From Phaeosaccion multiseriatum (lineage: Eukaryota > Protista > Ochrophyta, other classes), in assembly GCA_965112735.1 (NCBI GenBank), contig OZ218951.1, positions 1,984,001 through 2,048,000 on the forward strand: a stretch of 64,000 nucleotides of DNA, read 5' to 3'. The translations under genes were made by a program, and so were the position numbers. Numbering within the stretch: the stretch's first letter is position 1; each line of letters opens with the position of its first letter. Under the pieces are notes generated by a model. It saw nothing but the letters and a program-made list of their open reading frames with translations. It searched no databases and was not told where the DNA came from. Below are positions 18,810 through 30,919 of the stretch, one piece after another.

Positions 18810-19513
18810 ATGACTCGCGTCATCCTCACTCTCTTCGCCCTGCTCTTCGTGGCAGTTCTCTCCGGCGCCGCCGAAGTCCCCGACACCATCAAGGACAAGC
18901 CGGCCCGCAAGCTGTAAGTTCAAGGATCGGATCTTTCGTGCTTGTGCCCGTGCACGTCCTCTACACTCGCTCCGCTCTCCTCTTCTCGGCTCTCGCACAC
19001 CTCTTCTCTGCCTCACGCTCCGCTCGACTTATGTTGTACGCTCGCTTTTGCCCCTGCCGCCTCCGTTCCGCCCTTCGTCCCTCCCCCGTCGCTCTTCACC
19101 TTCACTCCGGGCGCCGCTCCGCTACAGGAGCTACGGCTCTCGAGGCGAAGGCCACCAGAGGGGACGCAAACTGTAAGTGACGTCTCCCTACATCGCTCAC
19201 ACCTGCTTACTGTCTGTCTCTCACCGTCTTTCCCTTTCCACTCCGCGCTCCTCATCTACTCGGATCCAATTGACTCCGCCGCCATCGACCCGGATCATGT
19301 GCGCCCCCCCCCGCTCAACTTCTTTACCCTGGCGATAACAGCTACCACTGGGGCGGATGGGGCGGATGGGGCGGATGGGGCAAGTGGGGCAAGTGGGGCA
19401 AGTGGGGAGGGTGAGTGCTGGTGGGGCAAGTGGGGACTGAGTATATACTTCCACACTATAGTCTCACATCTGTCCTCCTCCCTTCACCTCCTCCTTCGCG
19501 CTGCAGCTGGTGA
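18810..19513 (+). CDS. secreted RKL-motif precursor of a Trp/Gly-rich peptide (74 aa), copy 1, 4 exons
   Basis: Exons 18810-18913, 19128-19172, 19342-19410, 19507-19513 give MTRVILTLFALLFVAVLSGAAEVPDTIKDKPARKL-SYGSRGEGHQRGRKL-YHWGGWGGWGGWGKWGKWGKWGGW*; strong gtaagt/gtgagt donors, all phase 2. Confidence 0.8.
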
Positions 19514-20887: not shown

Positions 20888-22586
20888 TCAGCCCATCTCC
20901 TCCGCCATGCTCTCCCACGTCTCGCTCTGCACCCGCCCGGGCCTCTCCAGCGGCAGGATTCCGCTCTCCTTGCCGAAGGTCTTATCCGTCCTTCGCATGA
21001 GGTCCAGCGCGGTTTGGGACCGGAAGAAGGCTGCTGCCGCCTCCGTAAGTCGCTGCTCGATGTCCCGGCCGAGCTGCCACCGCCGGGCCTCAGCCAAGGC
21101 CTTGTCCACCGAAGCACCGGCCGAGAGGAGCTGCCGCACAATGCTGTGATGATCACTGCAGATAGCGGCAGCCAGCGGGGAACAAGGGATGTCGACTCTT
21201 GAGGCATCCATGGGGGCTCCCGCAGAGATGAGACGAGCGACGACGGCCTCGTGCCCACCCTCCGCGGCAAGAAGGAGGGGTGTTGCGCCAGTGTTGGCCT
21301 CTTTGTCCACACGCGCTCCCGCACAGAGAAGCTTCTCCACCACGGCGTCGTGTCCATGTTGACAGGCAAAGTGAAGAGCAGTGTAACCTTTGGGTTCAGC
21401 CTTGTCGATCGGGGATCCCGCAGAGATGAGACGAGCGACGACGGCCTCGTGCCCATTCTTCGCGGCAAGAAGGAGGGGCGTCGCGCCATTGTTGGCCTCT
21501 TTGTCCACACGTGCTCCCGCAGAGAGAAGCTTCTCCACCACGGCGTCGTCTCCACGTTGAGAGGCCATGTGAAGAGCAGTGAAACCTTTGGGGTCAGCCT
21601 TGTCGATGGGTGACCCCGCAGAGATGAGACGAGCGACGACGGCCTCGTGCCCACCCTCCGCGGCAAGGATGAGGGGTGTTGCGCCAGTGTTGGTCTCTTT
21701 GTCCACACGTGCTCCCGCAGAGAGAAGCTTCTCCACCACGGAGTCGTGCCCTTCCTGACAGGCAAAGTGAAGAGCAGTGAAACCTTCGGGGTCAGCCTTG
21801 TCGATGATGGCGTGAGCCCTGATGAGCTGCTGTACAATGCCCGCATGTCCATTGAACGATGCCTGCAGAAGCGGAGTAGCCCCGAGATTATCTGCGTGGT
21901 TCACATCCGCTTGGGCTGAGATGAGGAGCCTTACAACAGAGCCATGCCCGTTCTGAGCGGCCATCCAAATCGGAGAAAACCCCTGCTTCTCCGCCAAGTC
22001 GACACTAGCACGCGCCGAGAGCAGCTGCTGCACTATCGTGGAGTGCCCCTCATCTGAGGCTGCAATCAAGGGAGTAGCTCCTGCGTCATTCGCTTCGTCG
22101 ACAGGGGCTCCAATGTCCAACAGCCGCCTCACCACCTGATCGTGTCCGTTGCAGACAGCGCCTATCAACGGCGTGTCTCCACAGGGCCCCCCTCTGGTTC
22201 TGAAGGAGGCCCCTTCCCGCAGCACAAGGTCCACGACATCCAGCCGACCGTATCTTGAAGCGCAGAGTGCAGACGAATCGCCCTCTTCATTGATAGGCTC
22301 ATCCAAACGCGCTTTGCCGTGCTTGGCGATGAGCTTCACAATCAGCGCTCTCACAGTGAGGAAGCTATCTCCTCTTTCCAGAGCCTGCCCGAGTCGCCGC
22401 GCCTGGGGTTGAGGGAAACGAGTTTAGGGGGGAGAGGCGGAAAAACTGGAAAAAAAGGGATAATGAAGAGAAAAAGTATAAGGACCCCTCTCTTTGATTT
22501 GTTTTTCTAGAGGACACCATCTTATAGGAGGCAGGACGCTGATGCTACATCCGTACCTCCTGCGTCAAAGTTGCCTGCTGCGCCAT
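20888..22586 (-). CDS. ankyrin-repeat protein, 12 repeats, 514 aa (array copy 1)
   Basis: 30-nt exon 22586-22557 (MAQQATLTQE) spliced to 22402-20888; canonical G-x-T-P/A-L-x-x-A-x-x-x-G-H 33-aa repeats. Confidence 0.9.
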
Positions 22587-22789
22587 GGTGAGCAAGTGGC
22601 CCCGCCCTTACAGCGTATGTACAGTAGTTGGTTTGGTGATCGGGGGGTTCACAGATGCCGATGGCTGTGTTGAGAGTGCTGACAGACACGTCCGCGCAGC
22701 CGCTGCCTAGATGAGCGGTGCCTGTCTTTTGCCTCTTACACGAGCACAGCACCCTTCTCCCCCCCTCTCTCTTTCTGCCTTGCTCAACC

Positions 22790-24362
22790 ATGTAAAGGAC
22801 CCTCAGCACTGAGGTCTACAAATTTTCAAACTCCCCCCTTGTCCCTCCCTCGAACGACGCACCCACTCGCTCGGTCCATGCATGCCCCCCTCTTACACTC
22901 GCGCTGCTCCTTTTTCTCCTTGTGGCAGGCCACCCGCCTGAAGGGAGCCATCATCAGTGGCCAGAGCGTAAAAAAAGGTGAAAGGGGCGGTGAGAGCCCT
23001 CGTCGCTGAAAACGGAGGGAGCAAGGCATGCTTGGACGAGCCCCTCGATAAGAGAGAGTGGGTTGCCCTACCCGCAGCTATATATGAAGGGCGGGGTGAC
23101 ATCATAGCTCTTCTGCTGCAAGAGGGGGCGTCGGCGAATGCTGCAAATTGGGTGTACGGGTTGACTGCGTTAATGGGTGTATGTACGGTAAAGGATGCTG
23201 CTGCTATTGTACCACGGCTTGTCTCTGCTGGTGCGGACGTCAATGCAGTAACGATGGAGAGAAACACGGCTCTCATGACGGCCTCCTCGGAGGGGGCCGT
23301 TGTGGTGGTGCACAAGCTGGTCTCCGCCGGTGCCAGCGTGGACTGGGTTGACAGTGAAGGTTCCACAGCGTTGACCCATTCGGCACAGGACGGCCATCAT
23401 GCGGTGGTGCAGTAGCTGCTCTCAGCCGGCGCGGAGGTCGATATGACAGATTCCGTAGGCTTTACGCCATTGGTAGTGGCCTCCCATCGAGGACATCTTG
23501 CGGTGGTGCAGCAGCTGCTGTCGGCCGGCGCTGATCCCAACCACTGTGATGACAGAAATGTTTGGGCCGCACCCCCTTGACGATGGCCACACGAAACGGA
23601 CACCACAGGGTCACGCAGCTGCTCCTCATCTCCGGGGCGGAGGCGAATTTAGGAGGCCGCAGCCAGTGGGATGCGCTCTATCTTGCAAGCCAACATGGAC
23701 ATGGCATTGTGGTGGATCAGCTCCTCGCAGCCGGCGCGAAACTCGAACGCCGCAATGGTGAGGAGGGGAGAAGTGCGTTGATGGGAGCGTCTATGGAAGG
23801 GCACAGAAGTATTGTGCGAAAGCTGCTCAGGGCGGGTGCAGAGTTGAATGCCGTGGGTGGCGACGGGTGGGGGGCGATACACTTGGCATCTCACGGAGGT
23901 CATGCTCGTGTCGTGGAGGAGATCATCTCAGCAGGTGCCGATGTGGAAATGCTGACTAGGGTGGGGGGTATACCTTTGTTGCTGGCTGCTGCGTTTGGTC
24001 ATGGGGCAGTGATTCATGAGCTCCTGTCTGCAGGGGCTGATCCTGACAATGAGGGCAGTGTCAGCAGCGGAACGCCCTTGTTTTGTGCAGCATTGAATGA
24101 CCACAGCGGGGCGGCGCTGGAGCTGCTCTCAGGAGGGGCCTCACTGGCAAAGGCTCTGACCAAAGCGCGAGAGGATCGCGATGAAGCCCGTATTGTAGAA
24201 TTCCTCCTGACCGCCGACAGGCAACACTTTGCGTCACAAAGCGCGCTGGACCTGATGCGGGACATTGACCCTGTCTTTGGCAAGGAAGGGGGGCTGAAGG
24301 TGTCCCAGAGAGAGATTGGCCCTGACGTGCTGCAGGAGGTGGCGGAGGAGATGGCATGGTGA
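22790..24362 (+). pseudogene. ankyrin-repeat pseudogene (divergent paralog), copy 1
   Basis: Ankyrin repeats split over ORFs 22978-23415 and 23562-24362; ATG-TAA at 22790, TAG at 23413, frameshifts; C-terminal SQSALDLMR..FGKE motif shared with the intact genes. Confidence 0.8.
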
Positions 24363-24659
24363 AAGCGGCACCTCTCGCCTGCGGTTTGGCCAGGGCGTTG
24401 AGAAGGAAGGGGACGAAAATGGCCCTCGTCAGACTTGCAGAGGCAGTGTTGATGGGGTGGAGCAGAGGTCAGCGTGAGAGGCTGTGGGGTAGGTAGGAGG
24501 ATGAAGGAGGGAGAGACGTCCAAGGAGGTTGGTGTGAGTGTAGGTGGTAATAACGTAAGAACAAGCTGCTTCACCACTCCTCCTCCTATCTTCTTTTCCC
24601 CTTCCCCCTTCCATCCCCAGCCCCTACGCACCCCTCACCCACTCACATAAACACGCACG

Positions 24660-25660
24660 CTTTCCAGCACTCACTCACCCACTCCTCACCCACTCACTCA
24701 CGCGGGACACACGGACGCACGCACTCGCACGCTCGCATGCACGCACTCACTCATTCACTTCCTCACTCCCTCCTCCGTCTCTCCCTCTTCCCTCCCTCTC
24801 TCCCTTCCTCCTTCCTCCCTCCCTCCCTCCCTCCCTTCCTTCCCTCCCTCCCTCCCTCCCTCCATCACTCACTCACTCACTCATTCACTCACTCACTCAC
24901 TCACCCACTCACTCACTCACTCACTCACTCACTCACTCACTCACTCACTTACTCACTCACTCACTCACTCACTCATTCAATCACTCCCTCCCTCCCTCCC
25001 TCCCTCCCTCCCTCCCTCCCTCCCTCCCTCCCTCCCTCCCTCCCTCCCTCCCTCCCTCCCTCCCTCCCTCCCTCCCTCCCTCCCTCCCTCCCTCCCTCCC
25101 TCCCTCCCTCCCTCCCTCCCTCCCTCCCTCCCTCCCTCCCTCCCTCCCTCCCTCCCTCCCTCCCTCCCTCCCTCCCTCCCTCCCTCCCTCCCTCCCTCCC
25201 TCCCTCCCTCCCTCCCTCCCTCCCTCCCTCCCTCCCTCCCTCCCTCCCTCCCTCCCTCCCTCCCTCCCTCCCTCCCTCCCTCCCTCCCTCCCTCCCTCCC
25301 TCCCTCCCTCCCTCCCTCCCTCCCTCCCTCCCTCCCTCCCTCCCTCCCTCCCTCCCTCCCTCCCTCCCTCCCTCCCTCCCTCCCTCCCTCCCTCCCTCCC
25401 TCCCTCCCTCCCTCCCTCCCTCCCTCCGTCACGCTTTTACTCCCTCAATCCCTCACTTCCTGGCAGACCCCCCTCACTCCCTCAGTCCCTCGCCTACCCA
25501 ATCACTCCCGCACGCACTCACTCTCACTCACGCACGCACGCACGCACTCAAGCCTTCACTCACTCCCCACCCTCACTACTCACCCCTCTCTCACTCACAC
25601 AGCACTCCATCCTTCCCTCACTCACTCCCTCACTCACCCCCCCTACTCCCTCACTTCGGC
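24660..25660. repeat. compound microsatellite (CACT)n/(CCCT)n, pure CCCT run ~24985-25426
   Basis: Directly visible; source of the spurious LPPS and GGRE ORFs. Confidence 0.95.
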
Positions 25661-26532
25661 TCCATCCCACCTATAGGCCTAGAGGTGTCTAGGCCTAGGC
25701 CGCTTACTGTGCCATCTAGCAGCAGGAACATTCTCTCCCGGGGGCTATTAGGGAGAGGAAGGGTCCGTAAGACCTTACGTATAGGTTAAAAGTAACGGGC
25801 CCGTGTCCCACATCCCCTCCTCTCCCCTTAGTTCTTTACCTGAGACAGATCGAGATAGGTACCTCTTAGGCTTCAGCTCCTTCGAGCAAGGTTAATCGGA
25901 GGCACCACTACGGACACTTAGTCTGTGGTGCAGTACTCTAACGGGCCCCCATCGGTTCTCTCGAGATCCACCACACTTTGTTCGGCTGTGAGATGCATAC
26001 TCACATAGCTACTACCGTCCGCCGTCGATTTCCTCTACAAACTACCACAATTGCCTCGACCAGGCACCACCTCCCATCCATGTGGATCTGCAGGTCGATG
26101 ACCAGGGAAGGGGAGCGTGGGCCGAGGGGCAGGAGCCCGAGTACGACAGCAGCGAGGAGGCCGCCGGCGCCACTGCCCCCTCGCCACCCCAACTGAGGCG
26201 GTTGCCCTTTCCGACTCCAGGAGTGGCGACGAGGGCGACAGCAAGCGAGCACCTCCACGACCCGGAGCCGAAGCGGTTCCAGCACGAGGAGAAGCAGGGG
26301 CAGTAGCCACAGCGACAGCACCGCCCTGCATGCCTTCGTGCTACACGAACTTTCGTCGTTCTCCGCCCAAGATGTTAGAAGCATACCGAGGTGATGAGGT
26401 TGGACTTATCAAGCATAAATTGTTAAATCTCCTGTGCCCTCTGCCCCTACGCTGACAATGCACGGAGCTCTCCCACGGAGTTCCCACCAAACAGCTTGAC
26501 CAAAGCTTGCACGCCTTGAAGAAGGACATCGC

Positions 26533-27717
26533 TCAGTTGCGGCAGTCGGCTCCTCTGCAGCGAAAAGAAGGACTACGATACGGAGGTGGAGTAAGCAAAA
26601 AGAAGAGCGGAAAACGCCGAGCTGGAACTTACGTAGAGGGCGCAGGTGTGGGTGATGCTTGGCTGTTGTCGATATAAATGAAGACCGAAGTTGATAGAAG
26701 CCATAGAAGCCCGGTCCGCGGTGTGAAGCGCAGGGCCGAGAAGAGAGGAGAAGTGGAGAGAAGAGAGTAGAGTGAGGAGAAGAAGACTCCGCTTGAGCAT
26801 GCAGTTCACTTGGGGGCTTACAGTTTGCGGGCGTGGCGGTCGCGATCATCCCCTAAGCCATCTTCATCGCCATCATCCCCGAACTCATCTTCTTCGTCTC
26901 CGTCCCTGACACGACGCGACGATGGTGTGCAGATGGCGCGCGATGGAGATAGGACAGCAGAGGGAAGAAGCGCGAGGGTAGGGGCGGAGAGGAAGATGTC
27001 AAGACGCCGGCAAGTGTAAAGCCGGGAGAGGGGGGGACGGAGAGAGAAACCCAGGGAGGGACGCAAAGAGGGCGCGAGGGGGAAACTTACTCCTGCAGCT
27101 TGCGGGCGCGGCGGTTGCCAGAGGGCGCAGGTGTGGGCGATGCTTGACTGTTGTCGATGTACATGAAGACCGAAGTTGATAGAAGCCCGGTCCGCGGTGT
27201 GAAGCGCAGGGCCGAGAAGAGAGGAGCAGTGGAGAGAAGAGAGTAGAGTGAGGAGAAGAAGACTCCGCTTGAGCATGCAAGTTCACTTGGGTGCTTACAG
27301 TTTGCGGGCGCGGCGGTCGCCATTATCCCCGAAGTCATCTTCATCGTTTCCGTCGCTATTGTTGGCGCAGTCCGTGAGGTCGCATGGAGAGGAAACGTCA
27401 CAGGAGAGGACGAAGCGCGAGCCCGGGGGAGTGGAGGCGGTGGAGGCGGATGTCAAGAGAGGAGGAGGGGGAGAGAAGCGCACAGAGGCGGGCAATGAGT
27501 CGGGGGGTTGCGAGGCAGAGGAGGGACAGCGGGCTCAAGAGCAGGTGTGTTCGAATGAGGCGACAAGAGCGGGGCAAAAGATCTTCCCCCCTTTTGATGC
27601 TCATGGAACTTACTCCTGCAGTTCGCGGGCCTCGGAGAAGGTGTCAGGGACTCGGGCGGCGCTGGAGAGCACTGCGACAAGGAGCAGGGTGAAGAGAGCG
27701 AAGAGAGAGAGGTGCAT
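26533..27717 (-). CDS. secreted RKL-motif multi-peptide precursor with Asp/Glu-rich and Pro/Ser/Thr modules (117 aa), 6 exons
   Basis: Exons 27717-27614, 27355-27299, 27147-27091, 26905-26822, 26662-26633, 26554-26533 give MHLSLFALFTLLLVAVLSSAARVPDTFSEAREL-QDDGNDEDDFGDNGDRRARKL-QASPTPAPSGNRRARKL-QEDGDEEDEFGDDGDEDGLGDDRDRHARKL-QASPTPAPSTGADCRN*; five gtaag..ag introns, all phase 2. Confidence 0.8.
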
Positions 27718-27999
27718 GGTGTGCTTGCGTGGGTTGGTTGGGTCCTGCGAGATAGCTCCTGTGTGTGTTGTTGTTGTGTTGTGTGACACGGGCAACACTC
27801 CACTCTCTTGGAGCCCTTTTGGATGATAGTATTCTTGATTGCAAAGGCCGTCCTGCAAAGACCCAAATTTGATGAGCGGGATGAGCACAGAGGCGGGTCT
27901 TTGCGGCATGTACCAGGCTGTGCAGACTGCGAGTGGGCCACTTGTGCCGTCCGCACATGTGCACAGAGGGGGGATAGCGCCCCTTCTTCTACGCGGAGG

Positions 28000-28840
28000 A
28001 GCCTTCGCCCCGTGCCAAGGTGCTGGCGCTGGAGGACATGAGGCGGAAGGTCCTGGCTGGCCATTGTGGGGGAAGGGCACCTTCGTCGCTGGTGTGAGCA
28101 AGGACTGGAAGAGGCTGTACAGCGCCGCTTATCCCCGGTTGGAGACCTCTCTTCTATTCGGATCTACGGCGGGCGCGCGTCAGTTTTTTCCACGCTACAG
28201 CCTTGTGGGGAGATGTGAGCATCTGCGAGGCCAAGGCCAAGGCCAAGGCCCTCCATCGCCACGGCTGCGCATGGGGCGAGAAAGTGTGCCAAGGCGCTGC
28301 CGAGAATGCCAAGCACGGCACGAGTATTCTCAAGTGGCTCCGCTCGGAAAGCCCTAACAAGAGACCGTGCCCCTGGAACGAGTATACTTGCACTCAAGCC
28401 GCATTGAGAGGGGACGTGGACATGGTCACGTGGCTGTTGTCGGATGAGGCATTTACTCCATTGGACTGGGGTGTGTGGAGCGAGGCTGCGCACAAGGGAT
28501 GTATCAATGTGCTGGAGATGCTTCTGAATCACCGCAGAGTCAGGCCTGAGCTTGAGGCGGCAGCGGGTGGTAGCGAGTGGCGATGGGGGGCTACCTGGGC
28601 TGCGGGGGAGGGCACTTGGAGGTGCTGTGCAAGAGGGACCTTATTGTTTGTTTCTTTGCTGTCAAGTACGCCGAAAGCCTACAGTATAGCTGCCGAGCGC
28701 CATGTGTCCATGGAACCAGGGTTCATTTCCGGATGTGCTGCTCAACACGGGTAGGTGGAGGGCGGGGAGGAACGACGCCTTTGAGGACATGAAGCGGTGG
28801 GCGCACGCCAATGGCCTCCCCTGCAACTGCGAGAACTGAG
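28000..28840 (+). pseudogene. degraded CPW-type ankyrin-like repeat gene
   Basis: Frameshifted fragments: FVAGVSKDWKRLY, HGCAWGEKVCQGAA, LKWLRSE..PCPWNEYTCTQAALRGDVDMVTWL, AAHKGCINVLEML, GGHLEVL, MCPW..WAHANGLPCNC. Confidence 0.65.
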
Positions 28841-30214: not shown

Positions 30215-30919
30215 ATGACTCGCGTCATCCTCACTCTCTTCGCCCTGCTCTTCGTGGCAGTGCTCTCCGGCGCCGCCGAAGTCCCCGACACCATCAAGGA
30301 CAAGCCGGCCCGCAAGCTGTAAGTTCAAGGATCGGATCTTGCCTGCTTGTGCCCGTGCACGTCCTCTACACTCGGCTCTCCTCCTCGGCTCTCGCACACC
30401 TCTTGTCTGCCTCACGCTCCGCTCGACTAATGTTGTACGCTCGCTTTTGCCCCTGCCGCGCGCCTCCGCTCCGCCTTCGTCCCTGCCTCCCTTCACCTTC
30501 CCGGGCGCCACTCCACTACAGGAGCTACGGCTCTCGAGGCGAAGGCCACCAGAGGGGACGCAAACTGTAAGTGACGTCGTCTCCCTACATCGCTCACACC
30601 TGCTTACTGTCTGTCTCTCACCGTCATCCCCTTTCCACTCCGCGCTCCTCATCCACTCGGATCCAATTGACTCCGCCGCCATCGACCCGGATCGTGTGCC
30701 CCCCCCCGCTCAACTTGGGCATCCTTTACCCCTCTGGCGATAACAGCTACCACTGGGGCGGATGGGGCGGATGGGGATGGGGCAAGTGGGGCAAGTGGGG
30801 CAAGTGGGGAGGGTGAGTGCTGGTGGGGCAAGTGGGGACTGGCTGAGTATATATATATGCGTGTCCGTCTCACATCTGTCCTCCTCCCTTCGCCTCCTCC
30901 TTCGCGCTGCAGCTGGTGA
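30215..30919 (+). CDS. secreted RKL-motif precursor of a Trp/Gly-rich peptide (73 aa), copy 2
   Basis: Exons 30215-30318, 30522-30566, 30747-30812, 30913-30919; protein identical to copy 1 except for one in-frame Gly deletion, while the introns carry more indels. Confidence 0.8.

Follow-up and report, generated by a model that had tools for sequence, protein, structure and literature searches.

A family of exon-cassette genes in the alga Phaeosaccion multiseriatum predicted to encode secreted multi-peptide precursors with Arg-x-Leu processing sites

The precursors of the diatom silaffins, silacidins, cingulins and frustulins carry an RXL motif after the signal peptide or propeptide and again where each repeat ends, and mature silaffins lack the RRIL and RRNL tails (PMC4557024). 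Silacidins are rich in Ser, and their activity requires phosphoserine (PMC4557024). Cleavage after the Leu is also known for the RXLR motif of oomycetes (PMC11754927), and plasmepsin V (PMV) cuts RxLxE/Q, with PMV-like proteases being present in oomycetes and a diatom (PMC3116508). Here, we describe an unannotated gene on the minus strand (27717-26533) of a 64,000-nucleotide window of the Phaeosaccion multiseriatum genome (contig OZ218951.1, C2 in the following; window C2:1984001-2048000). The interpretation that we favour, which we hold to be about evenly balanced between right and wrong, is that the gene is a real one for a secreted multi-peptide precursor processed at Arg-x-Leu, with a constrained proline peptide and with acidic peptides serving as spacers or polyanions. 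The evidence consists of the anatomy of the gene, its paralogs, the substitutions among them and the enzyme genes found or not found in the genome.

To define the gene, all GTAAG donors and matching acceptors in 26300-28000 were located. Six exons and five introns result, and the coding sequence of 354 nucleotides (nt) gives 117 amino acids (aa) and ends in TGA. All five introns are in phase 2, with GTAAGT or GTAAGC as donors and AG as acceptors, and the internal exons of 57, 57, 84 and 30 nt are symmetric cassettes. Re-reading the minus strand and relocating its splice sites showed that the six exons and the two intron positions given in a first-pass annotation of this DNA were exact. The parts of the gene, from its 5′ end, are as follows.

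27614..27717, minus strand: exon 1, 104 nt; ATG at 27717, codes for signal peptide MHLSLFALFTLLLVAVLSSAA, a short propeptide RVPDTFSEAREL and Gln, and holds 2 nt of the codon that follows
27356..27613, minus strand: intron 1, GTAAGT..AG, phase 2
27299..27355, minus strand: exon 2, 57 nt; acidic module 1, (Q)DDGNDEDDFGDNGD, and spacer RRARKL; core charge -8
27148..27298, minus strand: intron 2, GTAAGC..AG, phase 2; near-copy of intron 4
27091..27147, minus strand: exon 3, 57 nt; QASPTPAPSGN and spacer RRARKL, then Gln
26906..27090, minus strand: intron 3, GTAAGT..AG, phase 2
26822..26905, minus strand: exon 4, 84 nt; acidic module 2, (Q)EDGDEEDEFGDDGDEDGLGDDRD, and spacer RHARKL; core charge -14
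26663..26821, minus strand: intron 4, GTAAGC..AG, phase 2; near-copy of intron 2 with a 9-nt insertion
26633..26662, minus strand: exon 5, 30 nt; second QASPTPAPS module, without spacer
26555..26632, minus strand: intron 5, GTAAGT..AG, phase 2
26533..26554, minus strand: exon 6, 22 nt; tail (T)GADCRN with a single Cys, stop TGA

The product has the layout signal peptide-AREL / QDDGNDEDDFGDNGD-RRARKL / QASPTPAPSGN-RRARKL / QEDGDEEDEFGDDGDEDGLGDDRD-RHARKL / QASPTPAPSTGADCRN, or in full, unit by unit, MHLSLFALFTLLLVAVLSSAARVPDTFSEAREL / QDDGNDEDDFGDNGDRRARKL / QASPTPAPSGNRRARKL / QEDGDEEDEFGDDGDEDGLGDDRDRHARKL / QASPTPAPSTGADCRN. The signal peptide, called by eye from its hydrophobic core and the small residues at -1 and -3, is followed by a short propeptide that itself ends in RXL (MHLSLFALFTLLLVAVLSSAA|RVPDTFSEAREL|Q). 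Each exon junction falls within a Leu codon (CT|N), and the first complete codon after it encodes Gln, so that one exon corresponds to one peptide and its basic tail. All four module borders read A-R-x-L|Q, first as AREL and then three times as ARKL. Consistent with the earlier proposal that each predicted product begins with Gln, this residue follows R-x-L directly at all four borders (REL|Q once, RKL|Q three times). The internal spacers RRAR, RRAR and RHAR are also compatible with a furin-type site. However, the first border, EAREL, holds neither a dibasic pair nor R-x-x-R, and the common denominator is therefore R-x-L and not a furin-type site. The first site (RELQD) and the internal ones (RKLQE) both fit RxLx[EQD].

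A duplication of two exons, as previously proposed, is borne out by introns 2 and 4, which are ~97% identical and differ by four substitutions, a 1-nt indel and a 9-nt indel. Exon 4 corresponds to exon 2 with 27 nt (9 aa) duplicated in tandem inside it, at 26840-26896, and owes its extra length to this. The two acidic exons differ at 6 of 57 aligned positions and every one of these differences changes an amino acid, whereas their flanking introns differ at merely 4 of ~150 positions. A scan of 26300-28000 against Rfam gave no match, and the conserved introns are thus no known RNA. Short matches on contig C13 in the search of the alga's own genome were rejected as CT-rich low complexity from intron 4.

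Searching the genome (67 Mb in 22 contigs) revealed four paralogs with 91-98% DNA identity to the window gene, giving five family members in total, all on C2 and within 220 kb. Two of the five contain one extra acidic/proline unit and therefore have eight exons and encode 164 aa. Rebuilding all five models yielded 29 introns, every one of them GT..AG and in phase 2, and left all five frames open. RKL ends all three internal units of the window gene and every unit in the four other paralogs. The six-exon model is confirmed, and the same grammar recurs in the four further paralogs far beyond chance. The two eight-exon copies (P4 and P5) differ from each other by 2.8% in exons and 6.4% in introns within the gene body, and by 18% and 38% in the flanks. 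Gene conversion restricted to the gene body could have produced this pattern, or the boundaries of the duplications may have differed.

The substitution pattern among the five copies was assessed from alignment columns, the variable ones being distributed as listed here.

Exon 1: 4 of 104 columns variable
Proline exon: 3-5 of 57
Intron 1: 21 of 258
'b' introns: 21 of 185
'a' introns: 22 of 160
Acidic exons: 17 of 84
Flanks: 17-19%

We counted 28 indels across ~1226 non-coding columns, compared to one frameshifting indel and one in-frame 27-nt difference across the 267 columns of the exons. All 12 copies of the QASPTPAPS module agree in protein sequence, their DNA showing three synonymous and no non-synonymous variants, and the QASPTPAPSGN peptide is identical in all seven full-length copies of the family. 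A pattern coding for ASPTPAPS is confined to the 12 family copies, other matches in the genome being at control level. The acidic exons, on the other hand, carry 12 non-synonymous and no synonymous variants and evolve at about the rate of the introns, their modules keeping composition only (net charge -7 to -15 across the family). Exon 1 shows four non-synonymous and no synonymous variants. These small counts are suggestive of QASPTPAPS(GN) being the constrained product and of the acidic modules not being constrained. The contrast between a proline module with synonymous changes only and acidic exons with non-synonymous changes only shifts the emphasis to the proline peptide, which may be the main product.

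Under the favoured reading, the signal peptide would be removed and an endoprotease of the secretory pathway would then cut after the Leu of each A-R-x-L|Q. The predicted products are two Ser-free polyanionic D/E/G peptides (-8 and -14), the 11-aa peptide QASPTPAPSGN and the C-terminal QASPTPAPSTGADCRN. The N-terminal Gln of each could cyclise, giving pGlu-ASPTPAPSGN, pGlu-DDGNDEDDFGDNGD, pGlu-EDGDEEDEFGDDGDEDGLGDDRD and pGlu-ASPTPAPSTGADCRN, and the basic RRARKL tails would probably be trimmed, as are RRIL and RRNL in silaffins. A possible role of the acidic modules is to balance charge as spacers, or to serve outside the cell as polyanions and counter-ions. New peptides would arise by duplicating or swapping symmetric phase-2 exons inside a fixed chassis of first and last exon.

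The candidate for the cutting enzyme is a plasmepsin-V-like aspartic protease encoded by a multi-exon gene at C7:3043300-3047000 (plus strand). It is a secreted A1 aspartic protease with both the DTGS and the DSGT motif and a Cys-rich, nepenthesin-like insert. Its first exon, the N-terminal lobe, has plasmepsin V as the best match in the PDB (4zl4, 8tyf; E 2e-14), compared to 7e-5 for chymosin; from this similarity, we infer that it could be the protease that cleaves RxL. Aspartic proteases on C9, C5, C12 and C13 were rejected as candidates, being cathepsin-D/pepsin-like and not PMV-like. Three of these (C5:1946681, C9:141928 and C12:460033) are near-identical, intronless cathepsin-D-like open reading frames (ORFs) of 565-769 aa with equal Pfam scores, which suggests a recently dispersed gene or the cargo of a mobile element. 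A glutaminyl cyclase gene (Glu_cyclase_2) lies on C4, and the genome has at least 11 2OG-FeII_Oxy_3 domains of the prolyl-hydroxylase (P4H) type. Judging from these gene matches, RxL cleavage, pyroglutamate formation and Pro hydroxylation would all be possible. The open literature searched contains no paper with both 'silaffin' and 'plasmepsin', and the link to this protease therefore seems unexplored there.

If the gene is expressed and its product cut as predicted, the RXL precursor grammar of diatom shell proteins would exist outside silica biology. The genome would then offer a testable candidate for an RXL endoprotease linking the processing of diatom RXL, oomycete RXLR and apicomplexan PEXEL motifs, and a clean case of peptide diversification by shuffling symmetric phase-2 exons that encode one peptide each. 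It would also add a lineage-restricted, unannotated family of secreted peptides, whose conserved product could be a signalling or a wall peptide. A wider proposal goes further: that RxL processing belongs to an older secretory pathway of stramenopiles and alveolates, run by plasmepsin-V-type proteases, and is not a silica speciality of diatoms, so that a non-silicifying alga uses it for lineage-specific extracellular exon-cassette peptides, including the invariant pGlu-ASPTPAPSGN as a possible signalling peptide. We consider this proposal unlikely as a whole.

Compared to described precursors, the locus is closest in layout to those of diatoms. Like the silacidin precursor of Thalassiosira pseudonana, it combines a signal peptide with a repetitive precursor in which Asp/Glu-rich peptides lie between basic sites of the R-x-L type (PMC4557024). 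Silaffin Sil1p of Cylindrotheca fusiformis, the cingulins and the frustulins share the RXL after the signal peptide or propeptide and at the end of each repeat. The first-pass annotation had drawn this analogy, and it holds for the signal peptide, for the RXL after the propeptide and for the RXL at the repeat ends (PMC4557024). The differences are equally clear. Silacidins have no interleaved proline peptide. Here, each peptide is one phase-2 exon. Sil1p and the other diatom RXL wall proteins are rich in Lys and Ser, bear heavy modifications and are linked to silica, while the present product is acidic and proline-rich and comes from a genome without a match to a silicon transporter (SIT) domain. 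Ser, Thr and Tyr are missing from every one of the 12 acidic modules in the five paralogs, and a Pfam scan of exons and ORFs found nothing except an insignificant signal-peptide match. In line with the caveat of the earlier annotation, namely that acidic modules without Ser make this an analogy and not a shown homology, exon-wise word searches found no relatives. Silic_transp (PF03842) gave no match in six frames of the 67-Mb genome; it is the sole Si-transporter family searched, and its absence is not proof. The mineral role suggested earlier is, as to silica, not supported by this result. With Ser-free acidic modules, no relatives by word search or Pfam and no Silic_transp domain, the gene resembles silacidin in layout without being one, and no finding connects it with silica.

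PEXEL of Plasmodium, TEXEL of Toxoplasma and RXLR of oomycetes resemble the sites described here in being cleaved after the Leu of R-x-L, and a PMV-like gene is present in this genome. Those motifs, however, occur singly near the signal peptide and export folded effectors, whereas here four motifs are predicted to release short peptides. A further likeness is to the precursors of yeast alpha-factor, animal neuropeptides and plant peptides of the CEP/CLE type, which also have a signal peptide, a repeated short conserved peptide and, flanked by basic processing sites, acidic spacers under weaker constraint; plant hydroxyproline peptides are similar in size to the 11-aa Pro-rich peptide. Kexins or subtilases process such hormone precursors at dibasic sites, while in the present genome no canonical kexin was seen and no homology was found.

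A second family follows the same plan. In a six-frame search of the genome, exon 1 found the five acidic genes and six weaker matches at 60% identity, two of which lie in the window and are the first exons of genes for Trp/Gly/Lys peptides.

30215..30919, plus strand: paralogous Trp/Gly/Lys peptide gene with 4 exons in phase 2, encoding signal-KPARKL / SYGSRGEGHQRGRKL / YHWGGWGGWGWGKWGKWGKWGGW; head to head with the acidic gene at 2.5 kb
18810..19513, plus strand: second copy of the Trp/Gly/Lys peptide gene

Both have a 104-nt first exon and encode signal-KPARKL / SYGSRGEGHQRGRKL / YHWGGWGGWG(G)WGKWGKWGKWGGW. With the acidic gene they have in common the first exon (84% identity over 68 nt), the phase, the final acceptor and the first part of the 3′ untranslated region, which is TGAGCGATGTCC. 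An acidic gene and a Trp/Gly/Lys gene stand head to head, 2.5-2.7 kb apart, in four of the five units; the cationic Trp/Gly peptides that the first-pass annotation had placed nearby are hence real neighbours. Since the arrangement was inherited by duplication, the four pairs do not count as independent cases. The 2.5-kb spacer that separates the acidic gene from its partner holds a short ankyrin-like ORF and may therefore be more than a simple bidirectional promoter. The Trp/Gly/Lys peptide has a charge of about +3, compared to -8 and -14 for the acidic peptides, and the proposed partnership between the two is weakened by these values. Genes for Trp- and Lys-rich peptides next to the acidic gene are loosely reminiscent of the W-type domains of cingulins. 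In metagenomes, the pattern (WGK)3WG for the partner peptide matched 86 contigs, which were rejected as relatives, being 9-bp microsatellites in unrelated DNA.

Several observations weigh against the favoured reading of a secreted precursor cut at Arg-x-Leu. The only public runs that include the locus are four from one study; their contigs over 25900-28300 cover the introns and show no joints, and the runs are therefore DNA. Splicing, secretion and cleavage are predictions from the genome sequence, and transcription, pyroglutamate formation and any function are likewise what we infer. Word searches by exon (proline, acidic and signal) returned no protein relative at E<=1-10. The queries were the proline exon within a 104-aa ORF, acidic exon 4 within a 152-aa ORF and the signal exon within a 163-aa ORF, with words limited to the last 40 residues and candidate proteins of roughly 57-285 aa. 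A degenerate pattern for the family peptide QASPTPAPSGNRR gave 0 matches in metagenomes, and in the databases searched the family is without cross-species conservation. The paralogs are young (2-7% divergence), which makes their intact frames and splice sites only moderately informative, and it likewise limits the small synonymous and non-synonymous counts. In one paralog (P3, C2:2227036-2228217, minus strand), the final codon ahead of the stop has lost 1 nt (AAC to AC), which replaces ...CRN* by ...CRT and 41 further residues; either a genuine variant or a mistake in the assembly could explain this. PMV and oomycete sites lie near the signal peptide, but three of the four sites here are internal. 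Finally, no enzyme has been named as the RXL endoprotease of diatoms either, and it is we who connect the motif with PMV.

Instead of being cut, the product could be a secreted, intrinsically disordered wall or mucilage (glyco)protein built of alternating blocks, in which the acidic parts would bind Ca2+, the basic RRARKL would bind anionic polysaccharides and the SP/TP/AP blocks would carry hydroxyproline-linked glycans as in arabinogalactan proteins (AGPs) or extensins. Non-contiguous [A/S/T]-Pro dipeptides are the classic arabinogalactan glycomodules, and the AGP-type stretch S-P-T-P-A-P-S, built of such dipeptides, does not vary among the 12 copies. Cross-links between chains could form through the single C-terminal Cys, prolyl-hydroxylase-type domains are encoded in the genome, and cleavage is only predicted. 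On the other hand, 2OG-FeII_Oxy_3 is a generic Pfam domain, and only ~96 aa are left after removal of the signal peptide, with no GPI signal or hydrophobic tail. It is hard to reconcile an uncut protein with the strict A-R-x-L|Q at each exon border, including the site after the propeptide, which matches the processed precursors of diatoms. We regard such a glycoprotein as improbable.

That the locus is a young tandem or segmental repeat, not expressed and splicing on paper only, or a family of pseudogenes, would agree with the lack of RNA, annotation and relatives, with the youth of the paralogs, with the mostly non-synonymous exon changes and with the one copy frameshifted at its end. It would not predict a textbook signal peptide at the sole conserved ATG, canonical introns of a single phase in 29 of 29 cases, exons that are nearly free of indels unlike introns and flanks, or a proline module with synonymous changes only. 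Additionally, a second family with different internal exons follows the same grammar. Taken together, this makes a silent repeat rather unlikely.

We give similarly little weight to a defence pair, consisting of a Trp/Gly/Lys antimicrobial and an acidic precursor that would supply neutralising or co-packaging peptides or anionic antimicrobial ones. Cationic peptides rich in Trp or in Gly form a known class of antimicrobials, the head-to-head order is kept in most of the duplicated units, and recent expansion in copy number together with fast-changing acidic exons would suit such a role. The arrangement was, however, duplicated along with the genes, the charge stoichiometry is poor and the invariant proline peptide would be left unexplained.

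Cleavage by a convertase of the kexin/furin type after RRAR or RHAR would produce peptides that begin with KLQ and cannot form pyroglutamate. All three internal spacers contain R-x-x-R and the dibasic RK, and P_proprotein domains exist in the genome. A dibasic pair or R-x-x-R, which kexin/furin prohormones have at every junction, is missing at the first one (EAREL|Q), where R-x-L|Q is kept nevertheless, and one spacer of P3 is RRDRKL, with RKL retained. No Peptidase_S8 domain adjoins a P-domain as in a canonical kexin: P-domains were found on C13, C1 and C9 and S8 domains on C8, C2, C12 and C7 (both counts being lower bounds), with no P-domain locus in the same contig region as an S8 match. 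The one P-domain locus inspected, an ORF at C1:5160440-5162194, combines a proprotein-convertase P-domain with somatomedin B and has no subtilase nearby. Convertase cleavage therefore appears very unlikely. A second P-domain ORF is located 3 kb downstream of that on C1.

The least probable alternative, to which we attach hardly any weight, is a functional analogue of silacidin whose polyanionic peptides organise polycations for the deposition of silica or another mineral: it fits the overall layout and the cationic peptide genes nearby, but not the Ser-free acidic modules where silacidin depends on phosphoserine (PMC4557024), the lack of a Silic_transp match and of homology, the acidic exons changing at about the intron rate and by non-synonymous changes only, or a partner peptide of merely +3.

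The cluster of peptide genes sits within an array of ankyrin-repeat genes, and ankyrin-repeat ORFs surround it on both strands (20888-24362 and 28203-28754). Just 3′ of the acidic gene, a long microsatellite of the CCCT/CTCC type occupies 24737-25789 of the window, reading (SLPP)n or (GGRE)n depending on the strand, and coincides with a strong dip in GC skew at 24001-26000.

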